From positions 219,374 through 283,373 of IMG/VR virus record IMGVR_UViG_3300049460_000312: 64,000 nt of DNA; one strand, given 5' to 3'. The position numbers were made by a program, and so were the translations under genes. Every line of letters starts with the position of its first letter. The first letter of the stretch is position 1. This document shows, piece after piece, positions 2,218-60,949 of the stretch. The notes under the pieces were generated by a model. The model was not told the DNA's origin. It searched no databases and worked only from the letters and a program-made list of their open reading frames with translations.

Positions 2218-3156
2218 TCATGCAGCCAACAACTCCGTCGGCGGCGTTTCGGCTTTGCTCTTGCCGTTACGCTCGTCTTCGTGATCGAGCAACTCCTGGT
2301 AGAGGTCGATCATTTCGCGAGTTTCTTCGGGCAGGTTCGGATACTGCTTCGGATGCTCGCGCAGGTAGTCCGTCGCCAGACGCAGTACGCGGCCGGTGAA
2401 CTGCCTGAGCAGGCTGACGGCGTTCTCGTTGATGCCCTGCGGCATGTCGAACGGGCTACGTTCGGTACGCGCACGAATCACGCCCGTGACTTCCCGAAGA
2501 AAGCCTTCGGACATCGAGGTGGCCCAATTGGCACGATTCATTTCGATCAGTTCCTGAATCGTACGGCAATGCTGCTTGTCGCCATCCAGGTAGGCGAGCA
2601 TGCGGTGCGCCGACCAGAGCGTACCGAGGTAAGTGCGTTCCTGCTTGTACTCACGGCCATGATCGTCAATGGCTTGTAGCGTGCGCATACCGTTGGTGAT
2701 ATGTTCACCGCAGCGATGCACCAGGTTCGGCAACAGGAAATAATCCTGCGCGATGTCCTCGAACAGGAACCGTACCTGAGCGTTGTCCGCGGCGAAGCGT
2801 TCGTACGCCATCAGCGAGAAGGTGCTCGCATTCATGATGCCGCGCAAGAGACTACGCATATCCAGCAGCGATACCATGATCTGCCAGCCGAGCTCCCGCG
2901 ACATCTGCGTGGAGAGCTTGGCGAGCTTGTCGCGCCGGTCATCCAGCGTGCCTTCGAAAATCGGCGCGTTGGACATGTTCAGGTAGTCCGAGACGGGTCG
3001 GTTCAGCAGGAAGCAGATGTCCGTGTCGGAGTTCGGGTCATTGAAGCCGCGCAGGATCGATCCGTGGATCGTCGCTGCCGTTACTTCCAGTCCCAGGTGA
3101 CGAGAGACTAGGGCGGTGGCTTCAGCAAGTCGTTGCTTTTTGAGTTGTTCGTTCAT
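2218..3156 (-). CDS. Pol-beta superfamily nucleotidyltransferase (PF10127/RlaP-like), paralogue
   Basis: IHGSILRGFNDPNSDTDICF motif; LLDMRSLLRGIMNAS resembles the family WDLRKAL-type segment. Confidence 0.8.
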   Translation of the reverse strand: MNEQLKKQRLAEATALVSRHLGLEVTAATIHGSILRGFNDPNSDTDICFLLNRPVSDYLNMSNAPIFEGTLDDRRDKLAKLSTQMSRELGWQIMVSLLDMRSLLRGIMNASTFSLMAYERFAADNAQVRFLFEDIAQDYFLLPNLVHRCGEHITNGMRTLQAIDDHGREYKQERTYLGTLWSAHRMLAYLDGDKQHCRTIQELIEMNRANWATSMSEGFLREVTGVIRARTERSPFDMPQGINENAVSLLRQFTGRVLRLATDYLREHPKQYPNLPEETREMIDLYQELLDHEDERNGKSKAETPPTELLAA

Positions 3157-3209
3157 TTTGGTATCCTCGATGTGGTTTTTGGCAATAGACCTAGATCCAT
3201 TCTACGTTT

Positions 3210-3217
3210 GTGATATG
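3210..3217 (-). promoter_or_regulatory. Putative phage early promoter (CATATCAC)
   Basis: Variant of the phiKZ early motif TATATTAC, upstream of the NTase operon. Confidence 0.5.
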
Positions 3218-3308
3218 TGTCTGAAACTAAGTCCAGATCACCATCCAAGCCAGTTGCTCACAACAAGGACACCGTGCTGTATTTTCTAATTACTTACAAC
3301 TATCCTAC

Positions 3309-3716
3309 TCAGAAATATATCTGGATAGAATGACCGTCTGCTTCCCGGTGCAGTGTATCGGTATTATGCAACCGCATCGAGACCACGCCGTGACAGCCCT
3401 TGGCATTGTCCTTCGCCCATTGGCTTGTGACCTTCTCAAAGCCCGCGTACGTGCAGAACCACAGGCGTTCGTCACTGTTGTTGACGGTCTTGATCACGCC
3501 CTTCTCGTAAAAGGCTTCAGAAGTCACGACGTCGAAGATATCGCTGACTTCCGGACTCATCTCGGGATCGGTATCACCCCAGTAAGCGAGTAGGATAGCG
3601 ATGATCAAGCGAAAGTTATCGCGTAGCTCAGCCTGCGAGCGAGCGCGACCGACGCCGTAGAGCAAAGCCCGTGTGTAGATCTTGTTGTTCGGTGTGATAA
3701 GGTGAAGGAAAGCCAT
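3309..3716 (-). CDS. Hypothetical protein
   Basis: About 135 aa ORF collinear with its neighbours. Confidence 0.7.
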   Translation of the reverse strand: MAFLHLITPNNKIYTRALLYGVGRARSQAELRDNFRLIIAILLAYWGDTDPEMSPEVSDIFDVVTSEAFYEKGVIKTVNNSDERLWFCTYAGFEKVTSQWAKDNAKGCHGVVSMRLHNTDTLHREADGHSIQIYF

Positions 3717-4140: not shown

Positions 4141-4313
4141 CGTTCTTCCTCATGTGGGTGCATGCGATAAAATAACCCTCCGAGTAAGAATTAGCAGCGC
4201 GCCCGCATTCTGTAGCCGCCACAACCCAATCCCGGTGGCTAGTTACATTCCATTTAACCTGGGTCGCTGTTCAGCTCGTTGGTTGAGGAAGTGCCGGTAA
4301 CGCCCGCAGTACC

Positions 4314-4384
4314 TGCTCTGGTAGTAGATTGGAATAACGCCGGTTACGACCCGGAAAAGTGGGTTCGATTCCCATCCAGGCAGT
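4314..4384 (+). tRNA. Degenerate tRNA-Arg(ACG)-like element
   Basis: Canonical T-arm GTGGG-TTCGATT-CCCAT; anticodon arm CCGG-TTACGAC-CCGG; bulged acceptor TGC(T)CTGG/CCAGGCA; weak D-stem; no encoded CCA. Confidence 0.55.
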
Positions 4385-4391
4385 GTCACAG

Positions 4392-4437
4392 CAAAAAAAA
4401 AAATAAAGCAGGGAGGCCGAAGCCTCCCTTTATGCCG
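4392..4437. terminator. Bidirectional intrinsic terminator
   Basis: A-run, then AGGGAGGC-CGAA-GCCTCCCT hairpin, then TTATGCCG. Confidence 0.8.
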
Positions 4438-4441
4438 CTGA

Positions 4442-4792
4442 TTACCAGTAACGGGCATCCCCGGGCTTCTCGTACACCTGCACCTCGTGGTCTGCGTTAC
4501 GCGTGTAGCGATGCAGTTCTTTCGAGACCTGTTGACGATAAGTCCGTTCTGCCGTATTGCGATAGCTCCAGGGCACACTCGCGTGAAGGTATTCCTTGGT
4601 CAGGCAATCGCCGCGCTTCTTGCGAAGTTTGGCGTACTCGACTTTGGACAGCATTTCCTGCGCCGCCTTCCATCCGCCCGATGCGACTGGAATCCAGTGC
4701 AGATCCCACAGATAACCGCCGTCCACCGGACGGGAGTTATCGATGCAGTATTCGAGTGTACGGCTGGCGTTGCTGCGATAGGTGCGAGACAT
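4442..4792 (-). CDS. Small basic phage protein (MSRTYR... type)
   Basis: 116 aa, Arg/Lys rich. Confidence 0.65.
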   Translation of the reverse strand: MSRTYRSNASRTLEYCIDNSRPVDGGYLWDLHWIPVASGGWKAAQEMLSKVEYAKLRKKRGDCLTKEYLHASVPWSYRNTAERTYRQQVSKELHRYTRNADHEVQVYEKPGDARYW

Positions 4793-5634: not shown

Positions 5635-5988
5635 TTACAGGAACACCAGTAGCACGTGTGCCGTGGCCGGATTCTCCAGCACCGTGATGACGAGCTCATA
5701 CCCCGCTTCAGGATGCTGCGCCAGCGCCCACTTGCTGCTGGTGGCGCGCAAGCCCGTGCGACCGAAGGTGAGCGGCTTGAGGAGGTCGAACGGCAGCACG
5801 ACGTTACCCTGCTTCTCGGCCGCCTGCAGGTACGCCAGCGTATCGGTCACCAGCTCCTGGATGTTCAACGACGTGCCACGAAAATCGATGGTGGCGACGT
5901 CCAGCTGCAGCGCGTCGTGCTGATGGACCAGCTGGACGTCATGAGGGTCGGGGATGATCTGATGCAGATCGATAACAGCAATACTCAC
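5635..5988 (-). CDS. Hypothetical protein
   Basis: 117 aa ORF. Confidence 0.7.
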   Translation of the reverse strand: MSIAVIDLHQIIPDPHDVQLVHQHDALQLDVATIDFRGTSLNIQELVTDTLAYLQAAEKQGNVVLPFDLLKPLTFGRTGLRATSSKWALAQHPEAGYELVITVLENPATAHVLLVFL

Positions 5989-6014: not shown

Positions 6015-6344
6015 TTAGAGCAGACAGCGTTTGAGCGTGGGATTGGAAATCAGACGACCCTTCACCTTGCCTTGTTGTGCCAGTTCAGCCGCTGCCGTGT
6101 GTTCACCTAACAGCACGACGAACTTGCCTTCAAATTTGGCGAACACAGGTTCCCGATAGAAGAGCTTGGCGCGCACCCGGTCAGTCAGCTTGTCCCGAGG
6201 TTCCACATTGGCTTGGTGCGACAACGCAGCCTGCGGGACTTCCACCGCCGGTGCCATGGCCAGATGAGCCAGCACTGCCTCAGCATTGTACTGGTGACCC
6301 TTGAACGCGATAAATGGCTTGGCCTTCAGAGTGAGGGTAGTCAT
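6015..6344 (-). CDS. Hypothetical protein
   Basis: 109 aa ORF with RBS. Confidence 0.7.
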   Translation of the reverse strand: MTTLTLKAKPFIAFKGHQYNAEAVLAHLAMAPAVEVPQAALSHQANVEPRDKLTDRVRAKLFYREPVFAKFEGKFVVLLGEHTAAAELAQQGKVKGRLISNPTLKRCLL

Positions 6345-6373: not shown

Positions 6374-7720
6374 TCAGACACTGAGCGTGTCTGCTTTGCT
6401 ACGAAACACTTCGTCAGCAGCAGGCGTCGATGACGTGACAGCCTGCACAAAACCTTCTGGGTCGTCCTCGTGCTCACTGAAGAAGGCGCTGATGTCGCAG
6501 GCCCGCAGCGAGCGCTCAATGGGCGTATACGCCGGCCAGGAGCGTCCGTAGGACTTCTCGTAATACTCCATGATCGAGCGGGGTTCCATCCGACCCACTT
6601 CAATCAGACACGTCACGCGACCCGGGCGATACAGAGCAGGATCAATCTGCTCCAGATGGTTGGTGGTGAAAATCACCACGCAATCCGTGACCTCTGTGGG
6701 TGACTGCAGACTCGCCAGCATGCGACCCAAAACCGGATCATCGTCCATGATGAATTCACCAGGCTTTGGTTCAGTTTTCTGACGCTTACGCAGCCCCTGC
6801 ATATAGGTGTCGAAATCATCCATCAAAAGGACAGGCACTTCCCCTTCAGTGATGTTCTCGCGCGCGGCGTAGACCATCTCGGAGAGCAGTACCGGATTGT
6901 GTCCGGAGCTGCTGATGGCGTTGACCACAAAAAGCGAAGTCCGTAAACGCCAGGCGATATACTCCGCCAGTGCGGACTTACCGGTGCCGGGCTCACCATA
7001 CAGCATGATCACGAGCTTGTGCGGGAAGTCCATCCTATTCTTCTTCTCGCGATGCCGAAGAAAAGTATCGATAGCTTCATCGATCTGCTGCTTGACCTTG
7101 TGGTCCAGTGCTAGAATGGGTAGCCCGGTAAAATTACGCTGACGCATGGCTTTAGGCTCAGCGCTCGACCACGGCGGCGTGATCAACTGATAGATACCAG
7201 GCACGGTATATTCACGCGCACTTTCACCCAGCACCTCCAGAATCCGCTTGCGATGCATGCGCAGCGAGGTCAATGACAGGGTGATGATGCGGCGTTGCTT
7301 CTCGCCCTTTTGCTGCTGTTCCTGCCGCCGCGACACCCAGATCCAGGCGCCAGCATAATAGAAGAAGAAACCGCCATCGGCCAGCGTCTCAGCGAGCCGT
7401 TTCTTACGGGTGGTGAGGCGCGCGGTCGAACGTTGTCCGGAGATCCGTTTCTGGAGCGCATGCTCAAACTTCTCTGCCACCATCTGGATCATGGTGCGAC
7501 CATCATCGTAGTCGTACTCGATGTAATACGTGAAGACCACGAAGCGACGGGCAGCGAACCAGAACTTCTTGGGTAAGCCCCGCGCGAAATACGCAATCGA
7601 TGCAAAGATGGACGCTGTCGCTGCCCCGGCGATAAGCGGATTACCATTCAGCGCACTGGAGACCCAGCCCGTGAACATACCTACTAACTGCTGGACCTGC
7701 ATAAGGGAGCTTGAAATCAT
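6374..7720 (-). CDS. Membrane-anchored AAA+ ATPase (BCS1-like architecture)
   Basis: N-terminal hydrophobic helix; Walker A GEPGTGKS; Walker B LLMDDFD; SRH TTNHLEQIDPALYRPGR. Confidence 0.85.
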   Translation of the reverse strand: MISSSLMQVQQLVGMFTGWVSSALNGNPLIAGAATASIFASIAYFARGLPKKFWFAARRFVVFTYYIEYDYDDGRTMIQMVAEKFEHALQKRISGQRSTARLTTRKKRLAETLADGGFFFYYAGAWIWVSRRQEQQQKGEKQRRIITLSLTSLRMHRKRILEVLGESAREYTVPGIYQLITPPWSSAEPKAMRQRNFTGLPILALDHKVKQQIDEAIDTFLRHREKKNRMDFPHKLVIMLYGEPGTGKSALAEYIAWRLRTSLFVVNAISSSGHNPVLLSEMVYAARENITEGEVPVLLMDDFDTYMQGLRKRQKTEPKPGEFIMDDDPVLGRMLASLQSPTEVTDCVVIFTTNHLEQIDPALYRPGRVTCLIEVGRMEPRSIMEYYEKSYGRSWPAYTPIERSLRACDISAFFSEHEDDPEGFVQAVTSSTPAADEVFRSKADTLSV

Positions 7721-8446: not shown

Positions 8447-9100
8447 TTATCCCCATGGATGCCAGTTGGCGTCCCGGTCCTTTTTCTCTGCAGCCACCAG
8501 CGCTTCGACCTCGGGCAAAGTCCACGGCGGTTCGAAGTCTGGGTCTTGCTGATAGCACTGAAACGGGGTGAGCTCACCCGTCGCAAGCTTTTCTTTCTGC
8601 TCGCGCGAATATTCGTGGTGTTTCGGATGCCGGCTGTCACTGACGAAACCGTGATCCCCATCGTAGCGCATGCCTTGGCGCTCCACAAACTGCTTGCCGT
8701 CATAAACGAGCACGCTTTCCCACCAGGAGTCTTCCCCGGCTTCGCGCATCAGGATGTCGCCTTCAGTGAGCACCAGGTACTGTTCGATGCCGAACATCAG
8801 GGAGGCGAAGAGTTGCATGTTCGGGTGCTTGGTGGCGGCCCGGCTTTGATACAGCCAGTAGTCACCGCAGTCTTCCTTCACGCGCCACTTATACGTCTTG
8901 AAGATCACATCCTCGATACAGCTCGTGAGGCGCTGTAGGAGCGGGATAGCGTCCTGCACGAACGCGCTCTGTGCATCGGTCATCGGATAGACCGATTCAC
9001 CTTCCTCCAGCTCGAACACGCGGTCCAGAAATTGATACACCTCTTTAGGTGCAAACTTCCGGACCTTGATACGCGTTGCGATGGCAGTGTAGTAACCCAT
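8447..9100 (-). CDS. Hypothetical protein, paralogue of 9532..10143
   Basis: Shares ATR[IL]K[VI]RK.AP and WRVKE..G..W.Y.SRAA motifs. Confidence 0.75.
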   Translation of the reverse strand: MGYYTAIATRIKVRKFAPKEVYQFLDRVFELEEGESVYPMTDAQSAFVQDAIPLLQRLTSCIEDVIFKTYKWRVKEDCGDYWLYQSRAATKHPNMQLFASLMFGIEQYLVLTEGDILMREAGEDSWWESVLVYDGKQFVERQGMRYDGDHGFVSDSRHPKHHEYSREQKEKLATGELTPFQCYQQDPDFEPPWTLPEVEALVAAEKKDRDANWHPWG

Positions 9101-9531: not shown

Positions 9532-10143
9532 TTAAGCCGCCTTTTCTACCGCGTCCAGTAGACGGGTATTCCAGGGCGGCACAAAACCTTCACAGGCCGC
9601 CTTACGGGAGGTACGGCTAATGGCCCCACAGAGGATCTGGGTGCGCTGGTCCTGCGGGTATTTGAAGTGGGTCGGATGGCGTTCGTCATCCAGCGTCTCC
9701 GAGAAACCCCGGAAGCTGGCGTTGTATTCGAAACCAATCGACTCGATGAACTTCATGCTCCAGTGACAGAGGACGATTTCCCGCACACTTGTAGTGTAGA
9801 GTTTACGGGCGAGGATGTCTCCGTCTTTCACAATCAGCCACGGCTGAATCGAGCGCAGCAACATCGCGAAGAGGTCGAGACTGCCAAAGTGGCAGGCTGC
9901 CCGACTTTCATAGACCCAGTGATTGCCCTTGTTCTCTTTCACCCGCCAGCCCCAGGTCTCGAACGACTCAGCGCCCGAGGTCAGCATCGTGCGCAGTGTC
10001 GAGCTGTTGTGCAGACCCAGTAACGAGTCTTTGAACTCCGGCGGATTCGTGATGCCATACAACTGATCCAGCATGGCGATGGTCCGCGCCGGAGCTGACT
10101 TGCGGATTTTCAAGCGGGTAGCGACACCTTCATAAGCACTCAT
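9532..10143 (-). CDS. Hypothetical protein, paralogue of 8447..9100
   Basis: Shared motifs with 8447..9100; lies just downstream of an early promoter. Confidence 0.75.
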   Translation of the reverse strand: MSAYEGVATRLKIRKSAPARTIAMLDQLYGITNPPEFKDSLLGLHNSSTLRTMLTSGAESFETWGWRVKENKGNHWVYESRAACHFGSLDLFAMLLRSIQPWLIVKDGDILARKLYTTSVREIVLCHWSMKFIESIGFEYNASFRGFSETLDDERHPTHFKYPQDQRTQILCGAISRTSRKAACEGFVPPWNTRLLDAVEKAA

Positions 10144-10243: not shown

Positions 10244-10279
10244 CGGCATAAAAAAGGGAGAGGGCCAATGCCCTCTCCC
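10244..10279 (-). terminator. Intrinsic terminator closing the ORF-free region
   Basis: GGGAGAGGGC-ATTG-GCCCTCTCCC followed by TTTTTTATGCCG. Confidence 0.85.
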
Positions 10280-11020
10280 GGAGTGCATTGCCTCGCGGGA
10301 ACGTTCCACCAAACGTCCCGAGATTCAACCCGCAAACAAACCACAGCTGAACGACGCCACCAGTCTTAGTGAGCGCGGGGAGGGGATACGGGCCCATCTA
10401 CCTATCTTACCCCTCCCCACCGCCTCGTCCCAGGTCACCATCAAACCTGAGCGGAGTGTGGCTAAGCCCACTCACTACCCTCATTGTTCTCCGCACCCGT
10501 AAGTGCATTGGGTCAGCTCCCAACTCAATGAAGGAACTACGCTCGTTCTAACGTAGCTTTGCTTTTTACCGCATACCAAGATAGCGGTGTTGACCTCTCC
10601 TCGTTTGCTTGGGTCTTCGAGGTTTCGCAATACCCATATCCTTCTCAGATAGGCTGGTGCTGCTGAGGTAGAGACATGCTGACGCCACTGGCGGACCTGC
10701 ACTTTTCCCTACGCTGCTGCTACCCAGGCTAGCCTTCTAAACTGATCCATGACCTTTGCATGGCTGCGTCGGCTCGTCTGCATTTGACTTTAATTGTCGA
10801 TCCCAACCGCTACACTACCTTAGTTCGTTCGAGGTGTTGTCGGTCTTACTTATCCTACTACTGGTCCGATGACTCGGGTGGAGGAACCAGTGGCAGGCTG
10901 CCGCTGTAGGAGGAGCTGGTGATCGCCTGTCACTCACGCCAGACGAAAAATGTTACCGTTCAGAAAGATAGTCCACGAGCTGCCGAACATAAAAGTTCCA
11001 TGCTGGCTTAGGGGGACATA
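10280..11020 (-). ncRNA. Candidate large structured ncRNA (about 740 nt)
   Basis: No credible ORF; more than 10 hairpins, some with UACG/CUUG-type loops; most G-U wobbles favour the minus strand; lies between a TATG motif at 11016-11019 and a terminator. Confidence 0.55.
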
Positions 11021-11097
11021 ATAATTAGGGAACTTTTTTACAGTTATCATACATAACAGCAAAAAAAAAGAACTCAGGTGGCCGAAGCCACCCAAGC

Positions 11098-11226
11098 TTA
11101 CTTGAGCCAGTGCACCAAGAGAGCAATCGCACCCAGAGCTACAACCAGCTTCAGCTTGTTCTTCTGCACTTGCACGTAGAACTCGGGTTCTTCTACGAGG
11201 CGAACGAAGACGGTACGCTTTTTCAT
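11098..11226 (-). CDS. 42-aa single-pass membrane peptide
   Basis: Manual translation MKKRTVFVRLVEEPEFYVQVQKNKLKLVVALGAIALLVHWLK; ATGA coupling; terminator follows. Confidence 0.6.
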   Translation of the reverse strand: MKKRTVFVRLVEEPEFYVQVQKNKLKLVVALGAIALLVHWLK

Positions 11227-11734: not shown

Positions 11735-11779
11735 TTTTCTTTCCTTTGGTGTTGGTGACAAAAAATAACAGCATAAAGG

Positions 11780-12020
11780 AGCGCAGGGGGCGGCGATGAC
11801 CCGAGGCTAACCCGTCCCCGTCCACCGCCGCCCTTCTCCTACACCGCCCTCCCCGGATTTGCCGGACGGAGGACTATTTTCGATCGCATGCACGAAAGGT
11901 CGCACTTCCGGATACTCCCGCGTAGGAAGCAATCCGACATGGCGTACCGCACGCGACCGACGTCGCGGGAACTCCCGCGAGGGTCAGCGCCGTCGGGTCT
12001 CTCTTCCCGGGGGCGCCAGA
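11780..12020 (-). ncRNA. Candidate structured ncRNA downstream of tRNA-Asn (about 240 nt)
   Basis: Consecutive GC-rich stems: TCGCGGG-AGTT-CCCGCGA; CCCTCC..CCGG-CAAAT-CCGG-GGAGGG; GGGCGGCGGTG/CATCGCCGCCC. Confidence 0.5.
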
Positions 12021-12040
12021 CTCTTTACTACAACAATACT

Positions 12041-12116
12041 TGGCTCCCCGGGTTGGACTTGAACCAACGACCAACGGATTAACAGTCCGCTACTCTACCG
12101 ACTGAGCTACCAGGGA
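12041..12116 (-). tRNA. tRNA-Asn(GTT)
   Basis: Full cloverleaf, anticodon loop CTGTTAA, encoded CCA. Confidence 0.97.
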
Positions 12117-12132
12117 TCTACTACAGAAACAA

Positions 12133-12209
12133 TGGCGCGGCGTAGGGGACTTGAACCCCTGACCCCTGGCGTGACAGGCCAGTACTCTAACCAACTGAGC
12201 TAACACCGC
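12133..12209 (-). tRNA. tRNA-Asp(GTC)
   Basis: Full cloverleaf, anticodon loop CTGTCAC, encoded CCA. Confidence 0.97.
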
Positions 12210-12219
12210 AAACTACAAA

Positions 12220-12590
12220 ACAAGAGGCTATACTCCCAGGGGCGACAGTTCGTTCTCTCAACCGCCGCTAACGCCGCAGTCAACTCTCGATCCTGCCCTA
12301 GGGGCTATAGTCTCGCTGCTAACGAGTTAATAACTTGAAGTTCCGATTGATGGTCTTCCCTTCCTACACTTTGACGCAAGGGTATCAGCCTTCGTCTCAT
12401 TGAGTCCCCGATGGGCGCGCCTCCTTTCGGTTAGCGCGCATGAGGCGATCGCGGCCTTTCGCCGCGCTCTACGTAGTTTCCGGCACCGTCCCCTTCGGGC
12501 GGCCGTGTCTTTGCCAGAACGCCAAAGTAGCTGCTTCAGGATTCTGGTAGAGCCGGATGCGAATGCTAGTGTGAGTCTTCGCATGTAATT
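12220..12590 (-). ncRNA. Candidate structured ncRNA upstream of tRNA-Asp (about 370 nt)
   Basis: GAAA/GAAG-capped stems, nested helices, a long 3' stem pairing 12224-12242 with 12296-12314; no credible ORF. Confidence 0.55.
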
Positions 12591-12742
12591 GACCGAACGT
12601 GTATTTTTTCACTCAATCAGGTTAGGAGAAAGCCTTGAGTAAACCCACGATAATCACCTCGACAATGATGCAGGCTAACAGCAAGTCATCGAGGTCACAC
12701 GAGGGTTCGTTCCAGGGTTCGTTCGGATCTTCGACCATCGGG

Positions 12743-13450: not shown

Positions 13451-13575
13451 GGTGTACTCGGATTAGTTTGAGAGAGATGTTACGAAGGATATAGCTCGGG
13501 GTAAAAAGCGGCATAAAGAGGGAATCCAGCGACTCCCTCTTTGAATGTTTTGGTCTTTCCCGTAAAAGTGCGTTG

Positions 13576-17896: not shown

Positions 17897-18042
17897 AACT
17901 CGCTTGTCGAAAACAAAAAAAAAATAAAGACTCACGGGTTGTGAGCCAAACTCATAGTAATCGACGGCATAAAGGGGAGAGGTGTGACCCTCTCCCCCGA
18001 GCTTCAAGAACCTACGAGAAAAGCTTACACCGATCTACTACG

Positions 18043-25965: not shown

Positions 25966-26203
25966 ACGGAGAGGCCCAGGAGAATTTAGTTATACACATA
26001 CGATTTACGGCATAAAGACCCGGCTTTGTGCCGGGCTTTTATGGGTAGCTTAAAGAGTGAACGGTGCGGTGGGTGGGGGGAAATGGCAGCCGTATAGACA
26101 GCCACGTCTTTCATGATCTGCACTTCATCGATGTAACCCGGAGAAACTCGTTGATAGAAATTACGGCACAAGGGTCGGGAGAACCCGACCCTATACCTGA
26201 GCT

Positions 26204-60801: not shown

Positions 60802-60949
60802 GATTCTTCCTGATTTAAAGTTAGATTGTTGAGCACCATGTAGGTATGGCTCTAGTTAGTATATGTGGTTAAAAGTTTTTTCATTTGACCCGCAGGCAAA
60901 AAAAAAGAACGGCATAAACGGAGAGGGCGCAGACCCTCTCCGTATGCAG

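Follow-up and report, generated by a model that had tools for sequence, protein, structure and literature searches.

The window analysed here is a 64,000-nucleotide stretch of the virus record IMGVR_UViG_3300049460_000312 (positions 219,374 to 283,373 of that record), in which positions 10244-11020 are free of genes. This gene-free stretch lies between two minus-strand hairpin/T-run terminators, shares the strand of all its neighbours, and is conserved in every relative that we could fetch. It was originally predicted to specify an independently transcribed, ornate non-coding RNA (ncRNA) of roughly 740 nt on the minus strand that belongs to no known family, and the analyses described below support this interpretation with some refinements. 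We call this RNA RNA-1, and a second conserved structured RNA located upstream, RNA-2. The features of the locus are as follows, where H1-H10 denote helices.

11775-12608, minus strand: RNA-2, with a 5' domain (12225-12608), the embedded tRNA-Asp and tRNA-Asn (12041-12209), and a 3' domain (11775-12040) ending in a hairpin plus TTTATGCTG; it is not part of RNA-1 itself.
11062-11098, minus strand: terminator of the upstream small-ORF operon, a 12-pair stem (11098-11071) with loop UUCG followed by T9, which would isolate RNA-1 from upstream transcription.
11017-11045, minus strand: promoter-like element AAAAGTTCCC-N9-TATG, upstream of and overlapping the inferred RNA start.
10250-11017, minus strand: RNA-1, with the inferred start at the G of TATG at 11017 and the inferred end in the T-run after the terminator hairpin, about 10250-10255.
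10727-10974, minus strand: 5' accessory domain of RNA-1, closed by a long helix in which GGACUAUCUUUCUGAACGG (10956-10974) pairs with GUUUAGAAGGCUAGCC (10727-10744).
10478-10622, minus strand: core domain A, comprising H1 (10618-10622 with 10599-10603), H2 (10568-10588), the linker AAAAAGCAA, H3 (10535-10558), H4 (10526-10534 with 10478-10486), which closes a three-way junction with H5 and H6, H5 (10507-10524, the invariant GAGYUGGGARCUGACCCARUG) and H6 (10493-10506).
10367-10477, minus strand: core domain B, comprising H7 (10470-10477 with 10367-10374), which closes the domain, H9 (10433-10447, loop UGAUGGU) and H10 (10375-10420, an 11-bp stem with an apical AGAUGG loop).
10280-10366, minus strand: 3' tail, with a conserved hairpin (ACGUUUGGUGGARCGU) and an ACAAU segment predicted to pair with the 5' end (UGUC).
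10244-10279, minus strand: terminator hairpin GGGAGAGGGC-AUUG-GCCCUCUCCC (stem 10279-10256) followed by T6, overlapping the TTTATGCCG punctuation motif.

Boundaries and absence of coding signal

The longest open reading frames (ORFs) overlapping the region are 73-91 aa, and they are not conserved; the relatives have 7-18 stops in every one of the six frames. Substitutions are flat over position mod 3 (42/45/41 and 80/81/72), and only 1 of 14, 4 of 24 and 1 of 15 indels in three pairwise comparisons are multiples of 3. Furthermore, no ORF piece hits Pfam or PHROGs at E<=0.1, and no gene is annotated or called at the syntenic place in any relative.

Both terminators were found by a terminator scan. 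The 10-bp stem of the downstream one keeps pairing through compensatory changes in relatives (alignment columns 812-835), while the hairpin core of the upstream one, GGCUUCGGCC, is invariant in FLC and RP12, the flanking stem positions differing in RP12. However, the T-run plus ATGCCG at 10244-10255 belongs to a genome-wide TTTATGCCG punctuation motif, with 16 copies against 0.35 expected, and is not specific to this RNA.

The TATG motif noted in the original prediction is real, but lies at 11020-11017 on the minus strand, one base off the position given there. The pattern AAnnTT[AC]CC followed by T[AG]TG occurs only twice in the window, and this is one of the two; it resembles the phiKZ middle motif AAanTTACc plus the late TATG, whose G is the start site (PMC4666361). 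The upstream element looks as much like a phiKZ middle promoter as a late one. Relatives keep the upstream element in various forms, followed by T(A/G)TGTCCC; in the phage FLC4-3B and the metagenome contig L026 it reads AAAATTACCC, and in these two lineages TATG is TGTG, which by phiKZ rules should weaken a late promoter. It is from motifs only, in the absence of expression data, that we infer RNA-1 to be its own transcription unit, which follows an upstream terminator, starts at a phiKZ-type promoter (AAnnTTCCC ... TATG, with G as the start) read by the phage's own RNA polymerase, and ends at a hairpin/U-run terminator.

Homologues and conserved structure of RNA-1

Homologues of RNA-1 occur in 12 phage lineages, of which four are isolates (RP12, RP31, FLC1-1B and FLC4-3B) and the rest are metagenome contigs, at the same place relative to the dCTP deaminase and the phrog_34653 gene. 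Full-length homologues are found in the four isolates and in the contigs L013, L014-L019, L026 and L035. RNA-1 is the best-conserved DNA of its neighbourhood, both against FLC1-1B (84% over its full length; flanking genes 75% or no hit) and against RP12 (76%; flanks mostly no hit). The productive route was to search protein representatives and then the contigs encoding them, whereas searches starting from a 235-aa protein and the downstream 203-aa protein found only the window itself and the query itself, respectively, and an ESM Atlas search with the latter was uninformative. Searching the neighbouring AAA ATPase and the 235-aa protein against phages with tblastn showed that no other cultured phage shares the locus.

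Among 50,697 phage records, only the 5 Ralstonia phage records (RP12, twice, RP31, FLC1-1B and FLC4-3B) match, and two conserved motifs are absent from 185,579 bacterial and archaeal genomes. Scans of viral contigs with three conserved k-mers returned only RP12, the window's own contig and chance hits. Among the latter, L008-L010 are the same unrelated sequence, while L011 and L034 share 21-22 nt with the H5 hairpin; however, L011's match lies inside an ORF, and both loci score only about 20 bits with R1, one of the two covariance models with which we modelled the core, L011's other strand scoring the same. We treat them as chance. R1 finds exactly one copy per phage. The exact 20-mer GCAAAGCTACGTTAGAACGA gave 0 hits in JGI metagenome contigs, although this says little, as that collection lacks even the source contig.

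A 264-nt core (10363-10626) is the only universal part of the family. Of its 67 tested base pairs, 44 show compensatory double changes, and 95-96% of cells are paired. In domain A, the 39 pairs are 96.4% paired in 13 lineages and 26 pairs change on both sides, against 30-45% paired in register-shifted controls; in domain B, the 28 pairs are 94.8% paired in 11 lineages and 18 pairs change on both sides, against 41-56% in the controls. In both domains, 0 of 500 shuffles reach these values. As the sequences come from few, related lineages, the shuffle statistics overstate significance, although the register-shifted controls and pair-type counts do not depend on this. Likewise, the alignments A7 and A9 were fitted to the model, which favours the structure, but the alignment A5, which was not fitted, gives the same result. 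The consensus fold of 7 sequences has 202 pairs, 48 of them with compensatory changes. The 5' domain rests on this RNAalifold prediction only, in which its closing helix (columns 54-72 with 298-315) is kept through many one-sided G-U-compatible changes and its inner helices show double changes; in the 3' tail, pairs 3-6 with 795-798 and helix 765-793 also show double changes.

The RNA folds better than expected by chance, and does so on the minus strand. The MFE z-score is -3.53 for the whole RNA (20 shuffles) and -4.40 for the core (0 of 200 shuffles), whereas the plus strand gives -1.36 and -1.74, respectively. In addition, the alignment folding energy is -184 versus -139 kcal/mol, and there are 211 G-U versus 23 A-C cells, which confirms the originally noted G-U bias toward the minus strand. 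Of the stems listed in the original prediction, those at 10493-10506 (H6) and 10568-10588 (H2), GCTACG/CGTAGT (H3) and CTGGTTCC/GGACCAG are real and covarying, and CCATG/CATGG is mostly kept, while CTCAG/CTGAG and the helix joining about 10890 to 10925 are not conserved. Possible tertiary motifs seen by eye, including an 11-nt receptor-like CCUAAG/UAUGG and a AAAGUCAA/UUGA pseudoknot, were not conserved or could not be tested.

The 5' domain of about 390 nt varies among lineages, being reduced in the contigs L027, L029, L030 and L031 and absent in L036 and L023. In L036, which carries a version of roughly 400 nt, the 3' tail is absent as well and the core runs straight into the terminator; the 5' domain and 3' tail are thus dispensable. 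The neighbours further upstream (beyond RNA-2) also differ in L036. Intriguingly, in the Logan contigs the RNA module has been swapped by recombination, with a breakpoint that coincides with the 3' boundary of the RNA, while the downstream genes and spacer stay 97-98% identical. Every locus that holds RNA-1 and includes enough upstream sequence also holds RNA-2. On the other hand, the adjacency of RNA-1 to tRNAs, which lie about 1 kb upstream in the window, is not universal, as tRNAs are absent near RNA-1 in L026, L027, L029 and L030; the link to tRNAs is therefore indirect and runs through RNA-2.

Possible roles and relation to known large RNAs

Taken together, these results show that the minus strand of 10250-11017 encodes a genuine, highly structured ncRNA, the first described member of a family that we found only in RP12-like, phiKZ-related jumbo phages and their uncultivated relatives. 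Its conserved 3' core comprises two multi-helix domains, i.e. a three-way junction bearing the invariant H5 hairpin and a domain with two conserved GAUGG-containing loops. No match to any described family was found: Rfam 15 gave nothing in the region at the gathering threshold, at E<=1, or at E<=10 on the region alone, four distant homologues also gave nothing at E<=1, and the papers searched do not mention it. From context and analogy only, RNA-1 might act in trans as a folded RNA (a scaffold, an RNP component or a self-assembling particle in the manner of GOLLD and ROOL), and is probably not a regulator of a neighbouring gene; it may work together with RNA-2, so a tRNA-related role is the leading guess. 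We put our confidence in the overall explanation at roughly 0.8; we are more confident still that RNA-1 is a real structured RNA of a new family, whereas the trans-acting scaffold or particle mechanism remains tentative and somewhat less likely than not. Nothing shows oligomerisation, protein binding or catalysis.

Among the alternatives, it is possible, though unlikely, that RNA-1 is a ribozyme, for example a tRNA-processing or RNA-repair catalyst in the manner of RNase P, or a self-cleaving or ligating RNA. Its large multi-junction core has invariant unpaired nucleotides (the AAAAAGCAA linker, the GGNGAAC junction and the AGCUGA loop), and two invariant loops contain UGG, the complement of the tRNA 3' CCA end, which might be comparable to the T-box and the RNase P L15 loop; it is also genomically coupled to the tRNA-bearing RNA-2, and an RNA ligase gene lies 2.5 kb downstream in L027. 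However, no RNase P, intron or small-ribozyme model matches even at E<=10, several lineages with the RNA have no tRNA in the sequence examined, and the UGG loops are invariant or differ in L029 and L030, so no covariation can test a pairing partner. It is very unlikely that RNA-1 is a divergent member of GOLLD, ROOL, group I or II introns, RNase P RNA or tmRNA that covariance models fail to recognise, although it shares the genomic habitat and the layout with a conserved 3' and a variable 5' part with GOLLD, and a conserved core with variable peripheral domains and a mosaic distribution with introns. In addition to the negative Rfam searches, ARAGORN finds no tmRNA in the window, no group II domain V-like hairpin was seen by eye, and there is no interrupted host gene or exon, because the RNA lies between two terminators in intergenic DNA and the flanking genes are intact.

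The remaining alternatives are also very unlikely. A long leader or 3' UTR that regulates the upstream small ORFs or the downstream phrog_4334 genes might be suggested by a same-orientation gene of about 200 aa that follows the RNA in most lineages (the phrog_4334 assignment being tested only for the window's two genes). However, terminators separate the RNA from both neighbours, about 100 nt including a TTTATGCCG unit lie between it and the next gene, at 520-800 nt with a multi-domain core it is far larger than known leaders, and the exchange in the Logan contigs indicates that RNA and gene are not co-adapted. A DNA-level element (replication origin, packaging site or recombination hotspot) would fit the lack of genes and the breakpoint in the Logan contigs, but not the strand-asymmetric pairing and the compensatory changes maintained over 12 lineages; moreover, the aligned sequences show no obvious iterons or AT-rich unwinding region, though no repeat search was run on the region. 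A decayed gene or small proteins are argued against by the lack of coding signal, and by blocks of 28-40 invariant nucleotides that alternate with compensatory variation, which is not a pseudogene pattern. A more speculative and rather doubtful possibility is that RNA-1 and RNA-2 are two parts of one phage-encoded RNA machine, an RNA-only or RNP assembly that captures, processes, protects or delivers phage tRNAs, possibly by binding their 3' CCA ends through the two invariant GAUGG loops; it would then be a functional class distinct from GOLLD and ROOL, possibly catalytic.

Very large, ornate bacterial and phage RNAs are rare, GOLLD, ROOL, OLE and raiA being the few known classes, of which the first two were recently shown to form RNA-only nanocages, although their functions remain unknown. 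Bacterial RNase P RNA and T-box leaders may resemble RNA-1 in being multi-domain RNAs with conserved unpaired GG-containing loops, and there is also a genomic link to tRNAs here, but a P4-type core could not be recognised in RNA-1. The non-coding RNAs reported for phiKZ (PMC13282480) are made by a phiKZ-related, nucleus-forming type of phage using phage RNA polymerases, as RNA-1 is inferred to be, but no RNA of this size or structure is described there, and no homologue occurs in any phiKZ-like phage outside the RP12/FLC clade among the 50,697 phage records. ROOL (Weinberg et al. 2017; PMC12286853) is also a large structured RNA of phages and prophages near tRNA islands, with no known protein partner; however, RNA-1 does not match its Rfam model, the size and helix layout differ, and ROOL is widespread in Firmicutes and the rumen, whereas the present family is so far confined to one jumbo-phage clade, the cultured members of which infect Ralstonia, a tractable plant pathogen. 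GOLLD (Weinberg et al. 2009; PMC12286853) is similarly a phage-encoded, ornate multi-domain RNA of about 800 nt that is often found at tRNA islands and has a conserved 3' and a variable 5' region, but these shared habits do not suffice for membership, the hosts and phage type differ, and there is no sequence or structure match to its Rfam model. GOLLD sometimes carries tRNAs in a linker, as the neighbouring RNA-2 does here, and the window locus splits the features between two separate RNAs.

The gene-free region and its homologues

The closest cultured relatives of the 283-kb uncultivated viral contig IMGVR_UViG_3300049460_000312, of which the window is part, are the Ralstonia jumbo phages FLC1-1B and FLC4-3B (about 84% identity over the region) and RP12 and RP31 (about 75%), the latter two being phiKZ-related phages (PMC5468394). 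Almost all credible genes around the region lie on the minus strand. Between a 203-aa gene and a 42-aa gene there are about 950 bp without a credible ORF, and the elements of the locus are as follows.

9532-10143, minus strand, the 203-aa gene of family phrog_4334
10279-10256, minus strand, terminator followed by T6
10367-10477, minus strand, core domain B of the RNA (RNA-1)
10478-10622, minus strand, core domain A of RNA-1
10956-10974 with 10727-10744, minus strand, predicted 19-bp helix closing the 5' domain of RNA-1
11020-11017, the TATG motif
11098-11071, minus strand, terminator followed by T9
11098-11226, the 42-aa gene
11775-12608, minus strand, a second conserved structured RNA (RNA-2)

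The four cultured relatives have an unannotated gap at the same place, and gene callers called nothing there in the metagenome contigs. In the homologous sequences every frame has 7-18 stops, substitutions are evenly spread over the three codon positions, and most indels are not multiples of three. Furthermore, none of the eight ORF pieces, searched separately, matches Pfam or PHROGs at E<=0.1. The folding energy of the minus strand is well below that of shuffled sequences, with z = -3.53 for the whole RNA and z = -4.40 for the core (0 of 200 shuffles), while the plus strand gives -1.36 and -1.74, respectively. The original prediction of a gene-free stretch packed with stems and bounded by terminators is thus confirmed.

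A BLAST search against 50,697 phage records found only RP12 (twice), RP31, FLC1-1B and FLC4-3B, both with the whole region and with a 51-nt probe of the most conserved hairpin at E<=10. More relatives were identified through the neighbouring genes. The cluster of the downstream 203-aa protein led to one JGI and seven Logan contigs; six of the Logan contigs hold the RNA, one of them only in part. An exhaustive HMMER search with the upstream 235-aa protein (phrog_34653) gave about 17 more distant clusters, whose contigs hold the RNA downstream of that gene, in full length in the contig L026, and with the core in the contigs L023, L027, L029, L030 and L031. A degenerate 21-mer of the invariant hairpin then found L035, L032/L036 and L037 in metagenome contigs. 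In all there are 12 lineages. Two conserved motifs have no exact match in one genome each of 185,579 bacterial and archaeal species. An unrelated 82-kb viral contig (L011:1670-1691) and a metagenome contig (L034:250-270) share a 21-22-nt exact match with the invariant H5 hairpin (GAGTTGGGAGCTGACCCAATG); however, the match in L011 lies inside a 109-aa ORF and the RNA model scores both at only about 20 bits, so this is probably chance.

Conserved structure, strand and family architecture

Blocks of 28-40 invariant nucleotides alternate with stretches where the changes are compensatory. In core domain A, six helices were defined by hand on a plain MAFFT alignment of 10 lineages: 96.2% of the cells pair, 22 of 39 pairs change on both sides, and 0 of 500 shuffles reach this, whereas shifting the 3' partners by 1-3 columns gives 29-47%. 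After model-based alignment of 13 lineages, these figures are 96.4% and 26 of 39. In core domain B, 11 lineages give 94.8% paired and 18 of 28 pairs with double changes, while slid controls give 41-56%. For the whole molecule, RNAalifold on seven full-length sequences predicts 202 pairs, 48 of them with compensatory changes, including the 19-bp helix closing the 5' domain and a pairing of the 5' end with an ACAAU segment just before the terminator. Of the stems listed in the original prediction, those corresponding to the helices H2, H3 and H6 of domain A as well as CTGGTTCC/GGACCAG are real, while CTCAG/CTGAG and the 10890/10925 helix are not conserved. In the consensus structure there are 211 G-U cells against 23 A-C cells, and the alignment folds to -184.4 kcal/mol on the minus strand against -139.2 on its complement; therefore, the RNA is read from the minus strand, like its neighbours.

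Only the 3' core (domains A and B, about 265 nt in the window) is universal. The 5' domain of about 390 nt is shortened in L027, L029, L030 and L031 (total 520-640 nt), although some of its motifs survive in L029 and L030 (ACAGGC, CUCCACC, GACAAUUAAAGU). In L036 (~4150-4560) and L023 (~3090-3311), coding sequence or gene calls run almost up to the core, which represents a natural minimal form of RNA-1 of about 400 nt with domains A and B only; in L036 the core then runs straight into a terminator plus TTTTATGCCG. A conserved 3' part with a variable 5' part is also how GOLLD is described (PMC12286853).

Transcription signals, module exchange and the neighbouring RNA-2

Upstream of the RNA, the close relatives keep AAAA(N)TT(A/C)CCC followed, 6-10 nt later, by T(A/G)TGTCCC. 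In phiKZ the late promoter consensus is TATG with the G as the start site, and middle promoters carry AAanTTACc near -24, sometimes with a TATG as well (PMC4666361). The element here therefore looks like a phiKZ-type promoter for the phage's own RNA polymerase, and is closer to the middle class than was assumed in the original prediction, which had envisaged a late RNA; as TATG is TGTG in FLC4-3B and L026, the exact start is uncertain. The inferred 3' end is a 10-bp GC hairpin with compensatory changes, followed by a T-run. The following ATGCCG, on the other hand, is not a feature of this RNA, but belongs to a motif, TTTATGCCG, that occurs 16 times in the window against 0.35 expected (e.g. 10244-10252, 13509-13517, 17965-17973, 26008-26016 and 60910-60918). 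At least 13 of the 16 copies sit directly after a GC-rich hairpin, mostly on the gene strand, and the motif also ends RNA-1 and RNA-2 in distant relatives. It is a genome-wide punctuation signal, either a terminator tail or a terminator plus the next TATG start.

Against FLC1-1B and RP12 the RNA is the best-conserved DNA of the neighbourhood (84% and 76% over its full length), while the flanking genes give 75% or no nucleotide hit. Against the Logan contigs, in contrast, the downstream genes and spacer are 97-98% identical, but identity drops to 76% within about 10 nt of the 3' boundary of the RNA (window 10244; L014:2900/2901 and L015:1733/1734 in two of these contigs), stays low through the small ORFs and the tRNA region, and rises again to 92% in the upstream RNA-2. 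The RNA-to-tRNA module has thus been exchanged between related phages by recombination, and the incoming RNA keeps every core helix through compensatory changes.

In L026, L030 and L031 the gene-free gap is twice as long, and its first half is another conserved non-coding stretch, whose signature GTTAGCAGCGAGACTATAGCC is found at window 12303-12323 on the minus strand. This RNA-2 starts with AAAAATACA, close after the stop codon of the 235-aa gene in most lineages, and consists of a conserved 5' domain (window 12225-12608) and a 3' domain that ends in a hairpin plus TTTATGC(C/T)G (window 12040 down to 11775). Its counterparts lie at L026:8745-9350, L031:8916-9580, L030:8833-9300, L027:6368-6936 and L036:3060-3690. 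In the window, tRNA-Asp and tRNA-Asn lie between the two domains, and in FLC1-1B four tRNAs and a tRNA-like element lie there, while in L026 and L031 the RNA is contiguous. A rough alignment gives 35 consensus pairs, 90% canonical against 40-49% when slid, and 20 with compensatory changes. nhmmer found the 5' domain in every locus that includes the region, including the loci L022, L024 and L025; in L022 a tRNA follows directly, and in L024 and L025 tRNAs lie further downstream. RNA-2 was present in every locus that holds RNA-1 and includes enough upstream sequence. tRNAs in a linker of a large phage RNA are also reported for GOLLD (PMC12286853), but RNA-2 has no Rfam match either.

The motif AAAAAATACA (a slight variant in L030) is conserved at the start of RNA-2 (window 12599-12608 and the same place in the nine compared lineages), and a similar AAAAAATACA precedes the short RNA-1 in L036; it may be another promoter class of these phages. 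In addition, tRNA-like elements with normal D- and T-arm sequences but an insertion of 15-45 nt in the anticodon region lie just before the 3' domain of RNA-2 (~5757-5870, minus, in the phage record L001; ~6195-6300, minus, in the phage record L002; and ~745-850 in L014). They are not annotated in the two phage records and ARAGORN did not call one in L014, and they could be intron-containing or degenerate tRNAs. Elsewhere in the window, a tRNA-Arg(acg) call at 4313-4384 on the plus strand, opposite to nearly all genes, scores 31.4 bits, just above the Rfam threshold of 29, and has several irregular pairs; it is doubtful as a functional tRNA.

Relation to known RNA families and possible function

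Rfam 15 (4,227 models) gives only the three tRNAs at gathering threshold. In the region it gives nothing at E<=1, and one meaningless HOTTIP hit at E = 1.3 when the region is searched alone at E<=10; the distant homologues give nothing either. ARAGORN finds no tmRNA, and as the RNA lies between two terminators and interrupts no gene, it is not an intron. The RNA is not described in the papers that we could search, i.e. the RP12 and FLC genome papers, a 2026 jumbo-phage review, the GOLLD/ROOL literature and a catalogue of 10,006 viral structured-RNA candidates, the IMG/VR-derived candidates of which average 67 nt and needed at least 3 IMG/VR loci, whereas this RNA has 2. RNA-1 is a new RNA family of unknown function, which belongs to the same general kind as GOLLD and ROOL (large ornate phage RNAs at tRNA loci), but is a member of neither, and the cultured phages and the natural long and short forms make it directly testable.

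The data show a conserved, strand-specific, multi-domain RNA structure under purifying selection, which lies between terminators and is portable between phages as a module. We infer that it is made as a discrete RNA by a phage polymerase and acts in trans; its size, its multi-junction core with invariant unpaired nucleotides and its independence from particular neighbours argue against a cis-regulatory leader. By analogy with GOLLD and ROOL, and because of its coupling to RNA-2, we tentatively favour a scaffold, RNP or self-assembling particle with a role in tRNA biology (a probability of about 0.35), while a ribozyme is the main alternative, though an unlikely one. The two invariant loops UGAUGGU and AGAUGG(G) contain the complement of a CCA end, which is a lead rather than evidence.

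Neighbourhood genes with possible nucleic-acid roles include a BCS1-like AAA ATPase in the window (6374-7720, minus strand), an RNA ligase in L027 (10748-12040) and a weak nucleotidyltransferase-domain protein in L030 (14236-15153), although no link to the RNA is shown. Downstream of RNA-1 lie two paralogous minus-strand genes of family phrog_4334 (8447-9100 and 9532-10143), a family of unknown function for which Pfam and the ESM Atlas gave no functional lead, and genes of about 200 aa also follow the RNA in most distant lineages; the two phrog_4334 genes are candidate partners of the RNA.
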